Below are positions 13,836 to 22,090 of a stretch of 64,000 nucleotides of DNA, piece after piece. Source of the stretch: Amoebophrya sp. A120. Taxonomy: Eukaryota > Protista > Dinoflagellata. The translations under genes were made by a program, and so were the position numbers. The stretch lies in the NCBI GenBank assembly GCA_905178155.1, contig CAJINV010000010.1, positions 1,036,678-1,100,677 on the forward strand, in the 5' to 3' direction. The notes beneath the pieces are model-generated. The model searched no databases and had not been told where the DNA came from. It worked only from the letters and a program-made list of their open reading frames with translations. Every line of letters starts with the position of its first letter. Within the stretch, counting starts at the first letter, position 1.

Positions 13836-16800
13836 ATGCCCCCTCCCCCACGACCCGGGGATGATGACGACGATCCGCAGTTGTCAGAGACCATGGACGG
13901 TGCGGCAAACGCATCAAATCCCTACGTCCAATACGAGGAACGTGATCACCAGCACGACAACCTCTCGGCTCCAGCCCGGAGATCCAACAGTCAAAGTCCG
14001 ATTCCCAGCATGCGGGGCAGCTGGACGGACCGGGAGTATGAAATGCAGATTTCCGAGCGCGTTCCGGGCGATCCGGTAGGACTACTGCAGCAGAACCACG
14101 ACAGGCAAAATGATGTACAAGATGACGACCGTGTCTACTCCGATGAACGCGAAGATTTTCCAAGCACGATCATACAACCCAAGAACTCGAACAGAACCCT
14201 CGCCCACGAGGCGCGCGCAAGTTCGAAGGAGGGCCGGGTGCACACCCCGAACAGCAGGAAGGCGGTGCCACGGCGAGATGCAGACTGGCTGGTCCGAAGC
14301 GACGAGGAGAGGGAGATGGAGTTTGCGGAAGCAGGACGTGGGCAGCAACCCGTGGGAACGACCGGATCACAATCCCAATCCGCCTACCACCGGGCGATCC
14401 AGAAGTCGCTGGACGACAGAGCTGGAAATAAGCAAGAACCTGTAGTGCAGCAGCAGCAGCAGCCACAGAACACTCTGAACCTCCAGATGAACAATCAAAA
14501 CAATGTCCAGAACTTCATGATCGACAGCCATTCGCAGGAGAAGTACTTCAGCAACACGCCGAAAGTCACCCGGTACGACGACGATGGCTCCGGCTCCGGT
14601 TCCGGCTCGCCGTCAGAAGAGGGGTTTCCCTACGCCCAGGAGAGAACGATCGAGTTTTCCGGCAGCTTTGACAACGGCAGCAGAACCAGTCCGTTCATTG
14701 ACGAGGATCTGAACGGGTGGCATCGGAGTAATAATGTTGCGGGGCCGGGGGGACGAGCGAGTTCTTCCAGAAACAGAAATCCCGACCACGATGCAGATTA
14801 CGATTACGACATGGGGTACAACAACACAAATGGCCGGCAAAATAACGTGAACAATTTCCGAACCGGGAACTACCAGTACGGTGGGGCGCAGTCGTCGACG
14901 GCAGGGACAGCGAGGAGGAATGAACAGAACTATTACCAGAGGAACGCTAACAACAGGCAGCAACAGCACCAAAGAAACCAGTTTGATGATATCATGTCTT
15001 CCTCCCAGCAGTTCATAAGCCAAATGACGAGCAGTGGGAGGGATTTCCTGCAAAGCAATTTTTTCAATACGACGGGCAGCAATCTTCAAATGAACAACCC
15101 CGGAGGCGGAGTTCATCTTGGTCGGAATTCCAACTACAGCACAGCTACAGGAGCTGCAGGCCCGTCGCCAGGGACGATGGGTCATCAACATCATTTCCAA
15201 CCTCCGAACCGAAACATGACGAACAACCTCGGGTCGCCGTTACTGGGCAGTAGAACTGGGAGCTTTGGATCCCCTATGAATAACAATTTCGGCACGAATT
15301 TCCCCACCATGAACATCGACGAGGAATACAACGCCGTGACAAATGTCGACGACTTCCTGACCCACCTATCAAATGCAAATATGTCTGGGTCTGGAAAATT
15401 GTGATGCTAAAATGTGGATGATGGAAACAGTTCCGAATGCACCCTAGCATGACAACTTGCCAGAACGCTTTCTCATAGGCAATCCGCATGAGAGCCTGCG
15501 TGTTTGCATGTACAAAAGAGGCTGCGACTTTTGTTGCTTTATGCAATACAGATTTCCTAGGTCTAGGTGTGGAAAGCTAGGATTACAAGTTCAAACCTTC
15601 CAGACCCAGACATTTTTGTATTCGATACCACCTCTACCGCTACTACGAAGCCAAGGGGCTTCATGGGCGAGTGGCAGACCACCTCGGCCATTTGGTCGCG
15701 TTGGCGTTCACCATCGGGTTCAGTTTTCTCCTCGTGTTTTACGTCAACTGGCCGGCGATTTTCAGCTGCAAATCGGAGGCGACCTGCGAGAAGGTGGTAT
15801 TCTGTGCAAAAGTATCGTGCTCGTATTGCAATCATGCATGACAAATCTTTTTCTCAAGGTAAATGTAAATCCGCATTACAAATTTTATTTCTCATGCTGA
15901 GGAACTTTGTAATGCATTTAGACGAGTGCGATACTTTTGCAGTGCATAAGTGGTGTTTTTCTACGACAAACCTTTCTCCAGTTTGTCCCTGCTCGGCTAC
16001 ATCGCGCTGTTTTACTTCATGCTCGCGGGGGTGTATTTGGTGTACAACGTGTTTCAGTGTATTGAGGACTTGCGCTATCCGCAGTGAATTTTAATTTTCC
16101 CTACACGACGTACAAATGTGGCTTCCGCATGACAAACTTTTCTTTCAACCCTCTTTAGCATGGCAAGTTGCTTCTTCTATTGGTTGGTGAAATCATTTGT
16201 GATGCATTTTGTACTTTTAGTACGGGAAATTTGTATTGCATATGCGCCACGCGTTGGAAGCCTCCGCGTTCTACAAGGACAAACTCTACATCCCATCGGA
16301 CGACGTTCTGGCCTGCATGTCCTGGGCGGAGGTGGTGGAAAGGATCATTCAGGAGCAACTCCGCTGTCCCTTCGTGATCCGAGAGGAAAGGCTGACCGCG
16401 CTGCAGATAACCAACATCATCATGCGGGAGGAGAATCTGCTGATCGGGTTGGTGAACAATGAACACTTAGAGAACCACCTACCCTACTGGCTGCCGAAAC
16501 GAATTTTCTACAGCAAATCCGTGCTGTTCGCCTTCCGGAACATCATCTACAAGAGCTTTTTCGACCACAAATCGAAAGTGGATTTCGGTTCCTTGAAGCC
16601 CGAGATCCTGTGCAACCACTTTCGCCTCGTCGGACTCTTCGCATTGATCGGGTTAGGCCCGATCTGTGTCTTCGTTATCGTAAGGAAAGATCCTCCCTCC
16701 CCATATCGAAAGTAAATTTGTGATGCTGATTTGTGACCACAAATCGACTTGTATTGCTAGAAGGGCAACAAGAGACGCAGCTGCTCCCTCGTTTGCAGGC

Positions 16801-19800
16801 AATTTGTCACGCTGTGTCCCGTTTCCAGTTGCTTCCTGTCATGCTGAAGACGCAAGGCTTTCTCACGCCAGCCAGAGCTACACTCTGGCTATGGGGAGGG
16901 GTCGTGATTTTTCCGCTTGATATTCGTGTTTCTGTACTTCTTCATGCGGCACTGCGAGGACTTCCGGTCACATAGGAATTCCCCTATCAAAAGGAAAAAT
17001 GCCTCTCCCCATATCGGAAACGAAATTTGTGATGCTGTATTTGAGTACACAAGTCGACTTGTGTTGCTAGAAGGCCAAGAGACGCAGCTGCGGCTTGAAT
17101 TGCAGGCAATTTGTCATGCTGTTCCCCAGTTCCAGCTGCCTCCTGTTATGCTGGAGATGCAAAGGTTTATTCCCACGCTAGCCAGCACTACAGTCGCAGT
17201 CCGCATCTTTTGCCTTCTAGCGTTACAAAGCTGATTTGTGGCCACAAATCTGCATCACAGATTTCCGTTTTGATATGGGGAAGGGGCGTTTTTCATTGTA
17301 ATATCCCCGTTGGAACGCCAGTGGACGGGGTACGCGGAGTGGTTTTTGCGGGAGTACAACGAATTGCCGCATGCCTTTAAGCAGCGACTGGAGAAGTCGA
17401 AGTTTTTCGCGAACGACATTGTGGACAAACAGGAAATCGTGTCGAACACGCCTTTGACCGACGGGATCAGGAAGTGCGTAAAATACGTCTCGGGCTCTTT
17501 GCTCGCGATTCTAGTCGTCATCGCCTGCTTCGACGACGCGCCTTTGCTGTTTTTGAAAATTTGGGACAAAAACCTCCTGTGGTACCTCGCCGTCCTCGGG
17601 TTCATCGTCACCCTGTCCGACACAAACTCTTCGGGCTCGGGGTCCGGCCCGTTTGGCGGGGGCGGCAAGAAGAAGCGGTTCGCTCTATCACATATTAAAA
17701 CGCTCCCACCCCATAGTGAAGTTGGGAACTTAGCAACACAAATCCAGAAGTCTTAGAAGCCACGCATGACAGGTTGCAGTCCGCAGTGTATTGCATGTTA
17801 GCAAGGACACCTGCATCAGAAATCCATTTGCTTGTCCTGTTTGCAGCATTAGAAATTCCAAAACACGACTGAGAGTGCCTCCCTACTTGGGGATGCGTTT
17901 AAACAAGTGTTCCTGTAGTCGCAAATCTGCATGAGAACTCTGGGGTGGGGACGTTTTTACACAGGATACGCCTCCGGGTCTCCGTACGAGGGGCACAGTG
18001 GCGCGACCTTGTACATGGAGAAGGTGATTTTAGACTTCGCGAAGTGCACCCACTACATCCCGGTCGCGTGGACCAAGGTGTTTGGCGGAATGAACGACTT
18101 CAACCCAAACAGGCGGTTGGTCCAGCTGCACCAGAGACTCTCGCTGCAGGAAAAATATCGGGTGGTGGAGGCGTTCGGTACTAACTACTTATTGGAAAAT
18201 GATTTTTTGCATTTTTGTATTAAAGTTGTCCACAGGAAATACAAATACAGCAAGGTTGAAAGTAACAAAAAAATGAACTTTTTGCCCGATTACCAGTGTT
18301 TAGCAAGTTTATTCTGGCAACCCGGGTTGGTTGTTATGCTGTGTGAATAATCGCGCGGTAGCATAATTGGGAATGCGCCTGGTCGAACCTGTGCTGCACT
18401 TGCAGCTTCGCAGCGTTGCTAGCAGCAGCGAACATTTCCTGTGCTCAGCACGTGGAAAACAGGTTGCCGCGTGTGGTCGTTACTTGGTCAAAGGTTCATA
18501 GGAAGCGACTGGAACAGCCTTCCTATGCTGTTCCGGAAGTGGGGCTAGAGGCTCTGTGCACCGACGCCGACGACTAGGAGACCCGGGTTCGAGTCCCGGA
18601 ACGCGCATCTTTTTTTGGGAGACAGAGTACTTGATTCCGAAAGCACCCTTGTACTCGTTCACCTCGTGCTTGTTCTGAACCTAGGCACAAAAACACCTTC
18701 AATTTGAAGACGCAAGAGAAACCTTTTTGCCCGAATGCAAGTATTTAGCAAGGGTATTCTGGTGACCATGGGCAACGGTTTTTCTTTGTAAGCAATCGCG
18801 CGGTAGCATAACTGGAAATGCGCCTGGTCGAGCCTGAATGAACTGAGGAAGGTCAAGGTCTGCGTACGTAGCATGGACTGAGACCTTCAGGTTCGCTCCA
18901 GTCGTCGGTCGACCGGGCGGCACCGCTGTCGTCCCGAAGCAGTGCAACGGACCGGCGGACGCGCCTGGTCTCGATGATAGGGGTTGCTCGCATAGACGCT
19001 CGTCTCGGGGGCTACGTCAGGTGCGAGAACAGGTCAAAGACTGGACGGAGGCCAAGGGGAATCGGCCGTGGCTTGGTCCAGTCCTGCCCGTCGACGGCAG
19101 ACTAGGAGACCCGGGTTCGAATCCCGGAACGCGCGCTTTTTCGGTTTTTTTTTTCTCCTCTCGCGTAGCCTGTCACCACTGCCGTTCGTCTGACCCATTT
19201 ATTAGTTACCTGTGCGGCTAGCTTCGGGTTATTTTGGTCCGCCTGCCGAAAAAAATATAAAATTAAAATGACACTATCCGCACTGGGCAACGACGAGGAT
19301 AAATTTTTTTTTCCCCGAGTCGTTGCATTTAGCAGAGGTATTCTGACGACCCAAGCATTCTGCTGTTCCACTGGAATAACTGCGCGGTAGCATAACCGGC
19401 AATGCGCCTGGTCGAGCCTGGCGTGCAGGTGCGTTTCCACTCACTGGAGACGGCGGCGGGCGTTCGGGTGACTCAGGAAGCCCGTGCGCACTCAACTGCC
19501 GCTCGTGGTTGAAAAACTCTCACCGCGTCGCCTGCCCGAAGTGCGAGTCGCGACTCACTTCGGTCTCTCGGGGAGGTCATCCGCGAGGATCCCCGAGGAC
19601 AGGTTCCAGACTGGCGGCTGACCGGGCCAACAGTCCACTCGACTAGGAGACTCGGGTTCGAATCCCGGAACGCGCATTTTTGTGTTGCGCGGGAGGATCG
19701 TTTGCGCAAATGGTTTTTCGTGCTGGATCACTACAACTCTTGAACCATGACAATCCTAGGTGTCGCCATTTCTTGCGTCCTCGGGAAGCATTAATGAGGT

Positions 19801-22090
19801 ATGTATGAGTCCCAAAAGCAAATGCAAACCTTCAAAACAGCCCGCTCCCGGGATGAATTACAGAAGAACTTTTTCGTCCCAAGGATCCAGCAGCTCATCG
19901 AAGAGATCTTCGGACTGTGCGTGACGCCAATTCTCCTGCTCGTCTACCTCCCGGCCGCGAGCATCGACATCTGCAATTTTGTCCGGAACACGGTGTATCA
20001 GAGTGAAAATCTCGGCGACTGGTGCAGCCTTGCGACCTTCGAGTTAGACCAAACCGACCCAAGATTGTCCCGGTTTGGCAAAATAGAAAAATCGGCGCTG
20101 AGCTTCGCTCTCATGTAAGTACAAGTTGTTGTCCCTATGGCTATGGCGGGTTGGATCATAGTGCGCATTTGCGATGAGACTGTGCTCCTTAGTAAATGTT
20201 ACGCACACAACGTCGCGTGATTTTTCCGCATGATCCGCTGCGCAATATGTAAAATGAAATTATCGAAAAACAGGTACCGCAACGCTCCTTCCGATTCGCT
20301 TCAAGAGCAAACCAACGCTTTGGTCCAGCAGCGCATCCCCTCTGGAGAGTTCAACCAATCTTCCCAAACCGAAACGAGGCCGACAGAATATGGCGTTCTC
20401 AAACGCTACATTCTCAACTGTTACATGAATTTGTGATGCAAGAATGGCAACAGGGAAAGGCCGGATCTTGCAAGTCTTGCATTACAAACTTGGCACAGAT
20501 TCCCATGCTGTTTGGCCCTTCCAAAATTTGTCATGCGAGGCAGCTTCATTGTGTGGACGTTGGTGCTCATTTTGCATGAGCAGTTGAGAGTGTAACAAAT
20601 CATGTAGCAGCTGAGAATGTAGTAACATTTGAGAACGCCATACAGAAGTGATGGAGATGAGTTTGATGGTGAACGCAAACACGGACACGGAAGTGGAACT
20701 GACCGAAGCTGATCCGAGCAATCCGGACCGAAAAATTCTGAACGCGACCAGTAGCAAACGGCCGATAGTAGATCATGATGCAGGGAATAATTTATCAACC
20801 GCAAATATGTCTGGGTCTGGGAGACTGCGATTTTTGTATATCCTAGTCTGGCATAGGCATGGCTCTGAGCTCTGATGTATTGCGAGGCCGCGAAGAGCTT
20901 CTCTTGCCTGCCATGCAAAAACGCAGTTTCTCATGCGGAGTACGAAACTCAGTCTCAGAACCACGGAAAAATTTGTCATGCTTAGCCGCGCATTGCAGTG
21001 TGCTCACTATTCCGTTCCGTGCAGATCACAAGTTTATTCCAGACCCAGACATATGTCCGATGCATACACTTTGGATTCCGAAGTGGAGACCAACTACACT
21101 GCGAAAGCCGCGGACCCCGTCTGGGGCTACCCGATGGCGGTTTTGCGGTTGTGCTACGATATCGAGCAGCTGGCGAAAGAGAGTTTTGAGGACTACAACT
21201 ACCTCCCCACGAGCTTAACGGAGTTGAAGGACCAATTCGTCGAGAAGCACGCCGATGGGACCTTTTCCATGCTGCCGGTCTCCCAGTTTTTGGATTTCGA
21301 TAACCCGGTTTGGTTTGACACCACGCACTACTTCTGGTTGGAAGTTTTGCTGAAAAACCGGGAAAGTTCCAGAAGGAACCGGGTCCGGACGATAAGTAGA
21401 GAGCCGTATGGCAATGGTGGACTATCAAATGCAAAAGTGTCTGGGACTGGAAGATTCTGACACTTGTCATGCACGTTTTGCATGAGCCCTGATGTCTGTG
21501 ATGCATGCCCTAGCATCACAGATTTTTTGAGAGCTTCTTGATGCCTCTTCCGCATTACAAATGCCCTCTCCGCGTAGCAAAAATTACATTCCCTTTGGTA
21601 CTCATGCAATACAGATTTTTCTGGAATCCAAATGCAGCATCACAAGTTGCATTCTTCCAGACCTAGACATTTTTACATTTGATATGGACCAATGGGGATG
21701 AACAATAGTGGCGGTGACACGGCGGGTGACGGGGGGGAAGGCGAAAATATTGATAACCAGGAACAACATCATGATCATCAAACCCAGTATAATAGAAATC
21801 CGCAGTACAACGGCGCTTCTGATGGTGATGATCTTCAGGATCGCGAGATGCGGGAGATCTACTCGGCACGGGAACGAACCGTGTCCAATCAAAACTACAA
21901 CCCTGCAAATTCCCGCATGCAGAGTCGCGGAGGCGTCAGCAGCAATAACGCGGATAACTACGTGTACCGGTACACTTCGTCTGCGACCTACCACGCACCG
22001 TCTTTGGGGGAAACGACCAACGAGGTCGGGGAGACGGTGTTGCCGCGGTTCCGGGACACGTTGCGGGCGGCGTTTGGGATTAGGGGATAG
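13836..22090 (+). CDS. ATG9: Autophagy-related protein 9 with a long low-complexity N-terminus, multi-exon
   Basis: After removing elements: NVDDFLTHLYRYYEAKG, SWAEVVERII, LTALQITNIIMREENLLIGL, RQWTGYAEWFLREYNELPHAFKQRL, IEEIFGLCVTP, LGDWCSLATF, GKIEKS. Confidence 0.9.
15367..15627. mobile_element. Introner family A
   Basis: DR CCACC. Confidence 0.9.
15798..15948. mobile_element. Introner family B
   Basis: DR GGTGG/AGTGG. Confidence 0.85.
16076..16242. mobile_element. Introner, divergent
   Basis: TAT...ATA, DR TGCGC. Confidence 0.8.
16676..16922. mobile_element. Introner family F (TIR core GGAAAAAT..CCCTCCCCATA)
   Basis: DR TTCGT. Confidence 0.85.
16985..17303. mobile_element. Introner family F
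   Basis: DR TCCCC. Confidence 0.85.
17686..17968. mobile_element. Introner family C (TIR core TAAAAACGTMCCCAC)
   Basis: DR CGCTC/CGCCT. Confidence 0.8.
18279..18322 (+). promoter_or_regulatory. USE (inside ATG9 intron)
   Basis: TTTTTGCCCGATTACCAGTGTTTAGCAAGTTTATTCTGGCAACC. Confidence 0.8.
18352..18613 (+). ncRNA. tRNA-framed ncRNA, family 2, copy 1 (~190-nt insert in the anticodon arm)
   Basis: 5' GCGCGG-TA-GCAT-AATTGGGA-ATGC-G-CCTGGTC ... 3' GACTAGG-AGAC-CCGGG-TTCGAGT-CCCGG-AACGCGCA; USE upstream, T7 downstream. Confidence 0.85.
18724..18767 (+). promoter_or_regulatory. USE (inside ATG9 intron)
   Basis: TTTTTGCCCGAATGCAAGTATTTAGCAAGGGTATTCTGGTGACC. Confidence 0.85.
18797..19141 (+). ncRNA. 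tRNA-framed ncRNA, family 2, copy 2 (~270-nt insert)
   Basis: Same tRNA-like ends; insert helices GAGCCTG/CAGGTTC and GACTGGAC/GTCCAGTC; T5 end. Confidence 0.85.
19305..19351 (+). promoter_or_regulatory. USE (inside ATG9 intron)
   Basis: T-run then CCCCGAGTCGTTGCATTTAGCAGAGGTATTCTGACGACC. Confidence 0.8.
19381..19681 (+). ncRNA. tRNA-framed ncRNA, family 2, copy 3 (~230-nt insert)
   Basis: Same tRNA-like ends; GAGCCTG...CAGGTTC and GACTG...CAGTC; T5 end. Confidence 0.85.
20389..20642. mobile_element. Introner family H (TIR TATGGCGTTCTCAA)
   Basis: DR CAGAA. Confidence 0.9.
20793..21066. mobile_element. Introner family A
   Basis: TIRs; DR TAATT/CACTT. Confidence 0.8.
21423..21684. mobile_element. 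Introner family A
   Basis: DR TGGAC. Confidence 0.9.

Follow-up and report, generated by a model that had tools for sequence, protein, structure and literature searches.

A candidate family of tRNA-framed non-coding RNAs with gene-specific inserts in Amoebophrya sp. A120

What kind of RNA is produced by a gene that begins and ends as a tRNA, but carries a long stretch of its own in place of the anticodon loop? Three such genes lie close together in the marine parasitic dinoflagellate Amoebophrya sp. A120, in the window considered here, by which we mean the whole stretch of 64,000 nucleotides that was analysed (assembly GCA_905178155.1, contig CAJINV010000010.1, positions 1,036,678 to 1,100,677 of the forward strand; all coordinates below are those of the window). 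An earlier note, made from the letters of the DNA alone, had described positions 18352-19681 as near-identical tRNA-like halves around differing inserts, and the sequence matches that description. The genes belong to a family of 15, the members of which are probably transcribed by RNA polymerase III. As to their products, the reading that we favour, with a probability of roughly 0.6, is that they are stable, unspliced, non-decoding RNAs in which the tRNA frame acts as a folding, processing or RNP handle.

All three genes lie on the plus strand and share one layout. Specifically, gene 1 (18353-18607; 255 nt) consists of a 5′ tRNA half (18353-18384), an insert (18385-18571) and a 3′ tRNA half (18572-18607); gene 2 (18798-19135; 338 nt) has its 5′ half at 18798-18829, its insert at 18830-19099 and its 3′ half at 19100-19135; and gene 3 (19382-19676; 295 nt) has the same parts at 19382-19413, 19414-19640 and 19641-19676. 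Each unit starts at a G (18353, 18798 and 19382) and finishes at the discriminator base (18607, 19135 and 19676). The 5′ halves are 32 nt long and vary at three D-loop positions only, while the 3′ halves, at 36 nt, vary at the discriminator, at a single base of the T loop and at the base that opens the T stem; the inserts, of 187, 270 and 227 nt respectively, are unique to each gene. Around them lies an ATG9-like gene (16236-20109, plus strand), recognised from open reading frames and two matches to Pfam ATG9 (E = 1.7e-20, profile positions 103-254; E = 2.8e-9, profile positions 422-478), the exons of which (16236-16712 and 19870-20109) flank the three RNA genes. The RNA genes are therefore intronic and on the same strand as their host.

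The count of three given in the earlier note proved too low, as 12 further members lie on seven other contigs, bringing the family to 15, with RNAs of 173-399 nt and inserts of 113-330 nt. When 115.5 Mb were searched with the pattern of the 5′ half there were three forward matches, with none in reverse and none for the control, and because of this its occurrence cannot be put down to chance. Neither half was found outside the family in the genome at up to 2-3 mismatches, on which ground a surviving canonical tRNA ancestor was rejected, and two pattern scans of metagenomes for relatives gave no match.

Upstream of each gene, again on the plus strand, lies an element that for gene 1 (18279-18323) is made up of a T-rich/GCCCGA box, a TTTAGCA box and a TATTCTGG box, and that for genes 2 (18724-18768) and 3 (19304-19352) was located by the same upstream-element pattern. 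There are seven matches to this pattern in the window where 0.44 are expected, and about 172 sites in the genome against two in a control. Across the family the TTTAGCA box stands 54 ± 1 nt before G1 in 15 of 15 members. The element also precedes U6 (5550), SRP RNA (4794; the SRP RNA of this genome is matched in its S domain only), tRNA-Sec (6112) and a tRNA-Val(CAC)-like gene that is interrupted by an intron of 44 nt. At the other end, a run of T7 (18610-18616), T5 (19137-19141) and T5 (19677-19681), respectively, on the plus strand begins 0-2 nt past the discriminator, so the T-run ends reported for each copy are indeed there; in 13 of 14 members a run of at least four T starts 0-4 nt past this base. 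Within the gene bodies no T4 run occurs in 3,975 nt, where 3.0 would be expected. The constant spacing of the common upstream element, the T-run end and the lack of an internal T4 run are together what marks a Pol III gene of this lineage with an external, type-3-like promoter. The claim that each gene has its own U6-type promoter thus stands for all three, but as an argument against a tRNA it is weakened, because tRNA-Sec and the tRNA-Val-like gene share the element and the promoter alone therefore says nothing against a tRNA.

Selection acts on the tRNA frame as an RNA structure. Across the family, pairing reaches 96% in the acceptor stem (pairs 1-5), 98% in the D stem, 98% in the anticodon stem and 100% in the T stem, and falls to 23-44% when the partner strand is slid along. 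Eight pairs show changes on both sides, and the covariation score of 0.284, compared to 0.140 in shuffles, was reached in none of 500 shuffles. Such compensatory changes, together with pairing of 96-100%, therefore indicate selection on RNA helices and not on DNA motifs. The pair 26:44 covaries as well, and the nucleotides of the tRNA elbow (A14, G18-G19, A21 and the T-loop consensus) are kept. The acceptor stem has its own peculiarity, in that position 6:67 is unpaired in 14 of 15 members and 7:66 in 10 of 12, with a single member (C3) having seven Watson-Crick acceptor pairs. In the window genes, five G-C pairs are followed by a G opposite an A, which is the irregularity that had been noticed in all three copies, and the 5′ strand is one nucleotide shorter than in the other members. 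Left unconstrained, the minimum free energy (MFE) fold of gene 1 recovers the acceptor, D and T helices and an anticodon helix of 7-8 bp; the MFE fold of gene 2 preserves the frame (z = -3.0), as do both the MFE and centroid folds of gene 3, with an anticodon helix of 10 bp (z = -3.0). The 7-bp anticodon stem described before is therefore present, paired and covarying throughout the family, although the thermodynamic ensemble does not favour it in 4-5 of 14 members.

These RNAs are not decoding tRNAs. In the anticodon arm, pairs 32:38 and 33:37 are formed and covary, and there is no 7-nt loop; position 33 is a C in 12 of 14 members, and neither U33 nor R37 is found. The triplet that would be the anticodon (34-36) varies between members and is base-paired within a further helix, helix A, which in gene 1 follows directly on the anticodon helix (18386-18465, plus strand; 18386-18392 paired with 18459-18465) and has plus-strand counterparts in gene 2 (18830-18838 with 18886-18894) and gene 3 (19414-19420 with 19600-19606). 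Five other members have a different complementary pair of strands at this site. The lack of U33 and of a recoverable anticodon was thus rightly noted, and with it the doubt that these genes could decode. A lack of clean calls from tRNA tools had also been predicted, and ARAGORN in its default mode called neither a tRNA nor a tmRNA for the window genes, while Rfam, searched at gathering thresholds and at E up to 10 over the window region and at eight further loci, had no family that matched any of the members. On other contigs, two members of the family have intron-bearing tRNAs as neighbours, and these reach 48-54 bits with the Rfam tRNA model and are called by ARAGORN too.

The alternative that survives best, which we consider unlikely, is that these are tRNA-like precursors with long introns, the insert being removed by an endonuclease of the tRNA-splicing type and a ligase. 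The products would be a tRNA-like RNA of roughly 70 nt and an intron RNA, either linear or closed into a tricRNA-like circle, with one or both being functional. Genes for tRNAs with introns do exist in this genome behind the shared promoter, the tRNA-Val(CAC)-like gene being one, and the intron mode of ARAGORN can force tRNA solutions for genes 2 and 3. However, these solutions differ in position and identity despite the common frame (Trp with an intron at 31/32 versus Ser with an intron at 35/36), and for gene 1 there is none. Moreover, the canonical 37/38 sites fall within a helix of 7-10 bp that is unbroken and covaries; the folds contain no 3-nt bulges and no bulge-helix-bulge motif, but a helix and then a junction; and a frame from which the insert had been removed would not have the 7-nt loop, U33 and R37 that a decoding tRNA has.

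Transcript evidence bears on the same alternative. A sequencing run, X3, which we take to be RNA from an automatic library guess and from coverage confined to the gene bodies, gives contigs at 18360-18579, 18812-19132 and 19462-19655, with the spacers and flanks bare. The contig of gene 1 spans both junctions between frame and insert, and that of gene 2 extends from the D arm through the entire insert to 3 nt short of the 3′ end; gene 3 is covered in addition by an independent contig from an estuary metatranscriptome (19467-19643), each of its two contigs being 100% identical. RNA with the insert still in place is therefore present. From two poly(A) RNA-seq runs there were zero reads. Since this evidence consists of assembled contigs, the ends and abundance of the RNA, and any short spliced product, lie beyond what they show; a short spliced product is compatible with them, but unspliced RNA was abundant enough to be assembled from two independent libraries.

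The inserts themselves can be read in more than one way. The 14 that were compared cannot be aligned with one another, the sequence that they share amounts to two short blocks, each held by one pair of genes, and no shared motif exceeds chance at k = 5-8; a protein-binding or target motif common to the inserts was rejected on this basis. The inserts of the window genes have no match or complement elsewhere in the genome. A guide or antisense role was also rejected, as genome matches to the region are paralogue promoters and frames only, and short complementary matches elsewhere in the window are no commoner than for shuffled queries (932 versus 809 HSPs). Divergence between inserts seems to be about that of the flanking spacers, by a measure that is noisy. 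An intron would be expected to look the same in both respects, and conserved ‘exons’ around fast-diverging inserts of variable length are a classic intron signature. Against this stands the enrichment of stable tetraloop hairpins, there being 13 hairpins of the UNCG/GNRA type with at least 4 bp where 3.3 ± 1.8 are expected, a number reached in none of 300 shuffles. Mean MFE for 14 inserts gives z = -1.75 relative to shuffles, and GC content is 62% in the gene bodies (frame and insert) compared to 44% upstream, with the inserts alone at 57-66%. Both helices that had been claimed as common to the inserts, the first helix and a hairpin initiated by GACTGG on the 3′ side, are present in all three window genes, the hairpin lying on the plus strand at 18507-18536 in gene 1, 19039-19084 in gene 2 and 19609-19635 in gene 3. 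Of the suggestion that the inserts are variable functional domains, what holds is that composition, stability and hairpin style are not random; the idea of a conserved functional cargo is weakened by the want of a common motif.

It could be argued that the RNA has no function at all, the halves being kept as DNA, with their A and B boxes serving as TFIIIC sites or boundary elements, or being the remains of disrupted tRNA genes in decay, and the inserts being neutral filler. The near-consensus A-box and B-box sequences inside the frame would fit this, as would the want of a common motif in the inserts and, for the window inserts, of any genomic resemblance or complement. We nevertheless regard it as improbable, given the compensatory changes and near-complete pairing of the frame, the presence in every copy of a terminator and of an external promoter that is intact and constantly spaced, the non-random character of the inserts and the contigs that show the RNAs to be expressed. 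Less probable still is that the tRNA body is a signal for import or export of a cargo, for example one that directs nuclear-encoded pieces of RNA to the mitochondrion or to the host cell. The mitochondrion of Amoebophrya must import tRNAs, the frame retains all the features that elbow-binding tRNA factors need, and two papers on the mitochondrial genome of Amoebophrya never mention rRNA, though 31 mitoribosomal proteins are reported. However, no universal rRNA core motif, allowing up to 20% errors, occurs in the inserts of the family or in the separate family-1 genes, and no rRNA model matches at E up to 10; fragments of mitochondrial or other rRNA were rejected on the same grounds. Finally, a tRNA-derived SINE or other mobile element, suggested by a 5′ end related to tRNA and by the presence of several copies, is hardly credible and was rejected, since there are only 15 copies, 14 of the inserts are unalignable and those of the window have no second occurrence in the genome, the copies keep their 3′ tRNA half, unlike SINEs, and the copies end in T runs with no A-rich tail and have an external promoter conserved outside the transcribed unit.

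Returning to the stable, non-decoding RNA that we favour, its production can be envisaged as follows. Transcription would be by Pol III, from the external promoter that this lineage uses for U6, SRP RNA and tRNA-Sec, with a predicted start some 4 nt upstream of G1 and an end at the T run after the discriminator. The transcript is expected to fold as a tRNA L-shape, with a 5-bp G-C acceptor stem, two conserved mismatches and canonical D and T arms, in which the anticodon arm would be a closed helix of at least 7 bp opening into a multi-helix junction with a GC-rich, gene-specific domain. End processing would be of the RNase P/Z type, and the full-length molecule would persist, a step that supposes the unspliced form to be stable. 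The tRNA module may then be a selected common handle for folding, end maturation, protection or the binding of tRNA-recognising proteins, and the insert a fast-evolving structured payload. A bolder version, which we consider speculative and unlikely, is that the tRNA body is a general natural scaffold, the 15 RNAs being matured at their ends by the tRNA machinery, stable and each provided with a different structured domain that evolves fast and has a job of its own. In that case the RNAs would make up a functional class of ncRNA that is new for eukaryotes. Possible jobs include a part in unusual RNA processing, or in the conflict of host and parasite as decoys or carriers that use tRNA trafficking routes. 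In the published analysis of Amoebophrya, U1 snRNA was not found, the majority of introns were non-canonical, with hairpin introns being abundant, and many RNA components were left unidentified (PMC7789003).

If the full-length RNAs are functional, they would form a natural eukaryotic family in which an intact tRNA L-shape is the common chassis for diverse large RNA domains. We know of no earlier natural gene family of this kind in eukaryotes. It would also follow that the machinery which recognises tRNAs (RNase P/Z, the CCA enzyme, La and exportins) can be co-opted for a repertoire of ncRNAs. If, instead, the inserts are spliced out, they would far exceed in length any tRNA-type intron that we know of in a eukaryote and would be cut from a non-canonical context, which would be notable as well. 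The upstream promoter occurs at about 170 loci, the majority without annotation, and is therefore a ready probe for the hidden ncRNA complement of the organism.

The statement that no eukaryotic family like this has been described agrees with the absence of such RNAs from Rfam and from the papers found in a limited literature search, although several known systems resemble it in part. Intron-containing pre-tRNAs and tricRNAs (PMC4536317; PMC6614914) likewise have their insert at the anticodon loop, with conserved halves and a variable insert, but here the inserts are of 113-330 nt, the sites lie in a continuous covarying helix, and there is neither a bulge-helix-bulge nor a functional anticodon loop. 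Vault RNAs are similar in being paralogous Pol III families with conserved ends, A and B boxes and a variable centre, but they are of 80-150 nt and have no full cloverleaf, whereas the present RNAs are of 173-399 nt; a search of the genome for a major vault protein gave no Vault repeat, and its control search was equally silent.

The tRNA-like partner of SRP in trypanosomatids (sRNA-76/85) and the bacterial YrlA Y-RNAs are non-decoding and keep the tRNA elbow as a module for binding proteins or RNPs. They resemble the present family as Pol III or small RNAs with such an elbow module, but are single tRNA-sized or permuted genes that have no large variable insert, and a six-frame search of the genome, the genes of which are split into small exons, gave no match to a TROVE/Ro60 domain. 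Another system of similar architecture is tmRNA (SsrA), in which a tRNA-like acceptor and T module is joined by a long helix, in the position of an anticodon arm, to a domain with structure that measures some 200-300 nt, the total size being likewise in the low hundreds of nucleotides. Unlike tmRNA, the family is nuclear and multi-copy and has hypervariable inserts, and it lacks a tag reading frame, a reduced D arm, a tmRNA call by ARAGORN and the G3:U70 pair of alanine identity, 3:70 being G-C in 14 of 15 members.

The last comparison is with a man-made system, the engineered tRNA scaffold, in which a recombinant RNA is placed in the anticodon stem of a tRNA, and the tRNA body confers folding, protection from nucleases and end processing of the tRNA type. 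The topology is identical, with a complete acceptor, D and T body, an extended anticodon stem and an arbitrary RNA of defined structure that replaces the loop; the present family differs in consisting of natural genes, 15 in number, each with an external Pol III promoter, and in the covariation of its frames and the pair of conserved mismatches in the acceptor. Biotechnologists arrived at the tRNA-chassis design independently, and if the bolder reading of a general natural scaffold is true, this family would be a natural precedent for it.

The region 18352-19681 (+ strand) holds three units of family 2, the tRNA-framed RNA genes, arranged head-to-tail and each made of four parts. Gene 1 (18353-18607) carries an insert of 187 nt, gene 2 (18798-19135) one of 270 nt and gene 3 (19382-19676) one of 227 nt, with one upstream element of about 45 bp per gene (18279-18323, 18724-18768 and 19304-19352), all on the + strand. 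The 5' half of the frame (32 nt) runs from an acceptor strand through 1-2 linker nucleotides, a D arm (4-bp stem, 8-nt loop) and position 26 to one strand of the anticodon stem (7 nt). The 3' half (36 nt) opens with the other 7-nt strand of that stem and continues with a variable loop of 4 nt, a T arm (5-bp stem, canonical loop), an acceptor strand and the discriminator, and a T run lies 0-2 nt past it in each gene. Unconstrained folding of the full transcripts recovered the acceptor, D, extended anticodon and T helices in genes 1, 2 and 3 (folding z-scores -1.6, -3.0 and -3.0, respectively). The sequence description in the earlier note is accurate. The host of the three genes is an intron, on the same strand, of an ATG9-like gene (16236-20109, + strand) that has many short exons and Pfam ATG9 matches on 16236-16712 and 19870-20109; this single intron houses three independent, putative Pol III genes in the sense direction.

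The family extends well beyond the window, as a search of the organism's own 115.5-Mb genome with both halves, the check proposed in the earlier note, found 12 further members and so brought the total to 15. Five of these are clustered on contig 2, two lie on contig 10, and contigs 3, 4, 11, 18 and 19 have one each; pattern scans of metagenomes gave no match to the family. All members have the upstream element, in which the TTTAGCA box lies 54 ± 1 nt 5' of G1 (the first frame nucleotide), and all but one have a run of four or more T within 4 nt of the discriminator. In most, an additional nucleotide at position 7, absent from the three in the window, brings the acceptor strand to the standard 7 nt, with U8 and A9. 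Two members are unusual. In one, on contig 3 (L016:838-1010, - strand, G000:C3, G000 being the window's own genome), the acceptor stem is a perfect 7 bp with C1-G72 as its first pair, both 32 and 33 are U, and the insert, at about 113 nt, is shorter than in any other member; this gene may resemble the ancestor of the family. The other, in the contig 2 cluster (L011:2441-2723, - strand, G000:C2), lacks a base in its 3' acceptor strand, which could reflect either decay of the copy or a mistake in the assembly.

Selection has acted on the frame as an RNA structure. In an alignment of 15 sequences (A2), scored for pairing and covariation on the named cloverleaf minus the anticodon loop, 96% of cells are paired in acceptor pairs 1-5, 98% in the D stem, 98% in the 7-bp anticodon helix and 100% in the T stem, and pairing falls to only 23-44% once the 3' partner is slid by 1-3 columns. 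Both sides have changed at eight pairs (1:72, 13:22, 28:42, 29:41, 32:38, 49:65, 50:64 and 51:63), and covariation scores 0.284, a value reached by 0 of 500 shuffles (0.140 ± 0.013). Positions 26 and 44 also change in concert (G/A to A/G and the reverse). Two positions are conserved mismatches: 6:67 lacks pairing in 14/15 members, and 7:66 does so in 10/12.

Judged from its sequence, the family-2 RNA is a non-decoder, as the earlier note had thought likely. Positions 32 and 33 base-pair with 38 and its preceding nucleotide, and both pairs covary; C occupies position 33 in 12 of 14 members; and the three nucleotides after it, which belong to the 5' strand of helix A, the first helix of the insert, vary among members that have one common acceptor/D/T body. 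No member matched the Rfam tRNA model, even at E up to 10, ARAGORN in default mode called 0/3 window genes, and with introns allowed its solutions for two of them contradict each other and the third gets none, so the clean call that the note did not expect was not made. Both tools do call the intron-bearing tRNA-like genes that adjoin two members on contigs 10 and 19 and serve as an internal control (L019:386-487 and L019:679-779, at G000:C10:1506135 and 1506428; L020:521-637, - strand; Rfam tRNA, 48-54 bits), each with the promoter upstream. In the twin neighbours the anticodon arm is long and carries at its tip a second stem, of 5 bp, whose 7-nt loop includes U33, and one neighbour is a tRNA-Val(CAC)-like gene whose canonical intron measures 44 nt. 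That gene and the window's tRNA-Sec carry the same upstream element as family 2, and hence the promoter alone is no argument against a tRNA; each gene does have a U6-type promoter of its own, but the contrast that the note draws on this point with the real tRNA-Lys is weakened.

The inserts, 113-330 nt long across the family, are not alignable with one another and share no k-mer above chance. Those of the three window genes have no second copy or complement anywhere in the genome, and the 14 members compared show no excess over shuffled queries in short matches to the remainder of the window. The inserts are non-random sequence: GC content is 62% in gene bodies (57-66% for inserts alone) but 44% over the 110 nt that precede them, T4 runs number 0 in 3,975 nt of gene body against 3.0 expected, the mean folding z-score is -1.75 (14 inserts), and UNCG- or GNRA-capped hairpins of at least 4 bp number 13, where dinucleotide shuffles give 3.3 ± 1.8 and 0/300 reach the observed count. 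Helix A (6-9 bp) abuts the 7-bp helix with 0 unpaired nucleotides, its partner strand lying 56-199 nt further 3', and its position is filled by either of two alternative complementary strand pairs, depending on the member; the anticodon arm thus ends in a multi-helix junction. The window copies have in common a hairpin on the 3' side (18507-18536, 19039-19084 and 19609-19635, + strand). The rRNA core motifs used to probe the inserts, which gave no match at up to 20% errors, are approximate only. Within the gene 2 insert, 18961-18970 is an exact 10-nt repeat of the gene's own 5' frame end (18820-18829, covering the last part of the D stem and the anticodon-stem strand; chance expectation about 0.05), which could give the 3' anticodon strand another sequence to pair with or be a trace of insert growth by internal duplication.

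Contigs of X3, a run that is RNA by the tool's guess and shares its organism label with the DNA runs, cover 18360-18579, 18812-19132 and 19462-19655 and leave spacers and flanks uncovered; confinement to gene bodies is not the pattern of DNA contamination or of a retained ATG9 intron. The first two span both frame/insert junctions of genes 1 and 2, the second running from the D arm to 3 nt short of the 3' end of gene 2, although such contigs do not reveal transcript ends, levels or whether a short spliced product is absent. An estuary metatranscriptome from a separate study contains a 177-nt contig within gene 3 at 100% identity. Two poly(A) RNA-seq runs gave 0 reads, as expected for Pol III RNAs, and are no test of expression.

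We propose, with a probability of about 0.6, that the genes yield a Pol III transcript with a tRNA-like fold that is processed at its ends and persists unspliced, the tRNA module being a handle and the insert a structured domain. Transcription would start about 39 nt past the last promoter box, the distance measured for U6 and SRP RNA, and so about 4 nt before G1, and would stop at the T run just past the discriminator. The transcript would adopt the tRNA L-shape with its payload on the anticodon arm, tRNA end-processing enzymes would trim the short leader and trailer, and the full molecule would stay unspliced, with a common handle and a fast-evolving insert. The main rival, that a splicing-type endonuclease cuts the insert out, would suit the intron-like evolutionary pattern, but we consider it unlikely, given that the would-be splice sites are buried in a covarying helix, that removal of the insert leaves no usable anticodon loop and that unspliced RNA is assembled in contigs. 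A neutral or DNA-level explanation is less likely, a purely DNA-level cause of the conservation (A and B boxes) being ruled out by the pairing and compensatory changes of the frame, and so are organelle-import cargo and SINEs.

The promoter motif has about 172 sites genome-wide, against 2 in the control, and precedes U6, an SRP RNA with the S domain only, tRNA-Sec, family 1 (a separate set of small RNA genes near the window start), arrays of purine-rich RNAs of about 85 nt and other unannotated genes. U6 gave ten matches at nine loci, two of them adjacent, in the 115,520,608-base assembly, and the samples in which the sequence occurs are marine or estuarine; the published Amoebophrya sp. A120 genome has 115.5 Mb and U6 at 9 loci, with U1 not found (PMC7789003). 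The match of the SRP RNA gene (4794-4941, + strand, about 150 nt) to the metazoan SRP model is confined to the S domain, positions 101-249, and no Alu domain is apparent; the shared promoter lies 39 nt before the gene, which also has a T run. The SRP of trypanosomatids pairs a truncated 7SL with a tRNA-like RNA, and for this reason an S-domain-only SRP RNA alongside a tRNA-like RNA family is of interest. Family 1 (1236-4430, + strand) comprises at least 5 genes under the promoter, with 5' ends like a family-2 acceptor strand joined to a D-like hairpin, 3' ends that pair back, no clear T arm and no Rfam match; tandem repeats of about 120 bp, each unit with a TTAGGG-like word and a T run, flank them (240-1000 and 2340-3500). 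The purine-rich arrays, such as that at L021 (G000:C2:1573600-1574500, - strand; spacing about 146 bp), recur at many promoter loci and account for dozens of the sites; each unit is a promoter and an RNA ending in a T run, and ARAGORN and Rfam found nothing in them. A repeated promoter-driven gene pair of about 70 and 120 nt (L023, G000:C1:4129100-4129700), dispersed at at least 5 loci, has no Rfam match at gathering.

The claim that no eukaryotic family like this has been described stands for Rfam 15 and the literature searched, where no family of this kind was found. The RNAs fail the defining tests of a tRNA, a SINE and a canonical intron-bearing pre-tRNA. As for protein partners, a six-frame search for that of Y RNAs, in a genome whose genes are split into small exons, gave no TROVE match, and for that of vault RNAs no Vault repeat matched in the genome, the control being likewise silent. 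We class family 2 with the broad kind of ncRNAs built on a tRNA-like module; its topology is like that of tmRNA, whose defining tests it nevertheless fails. By analogy, the family-2 RNA would work as an engineered tRNA scaffold does, and if its cargo proves functional the family would be a new functional class.
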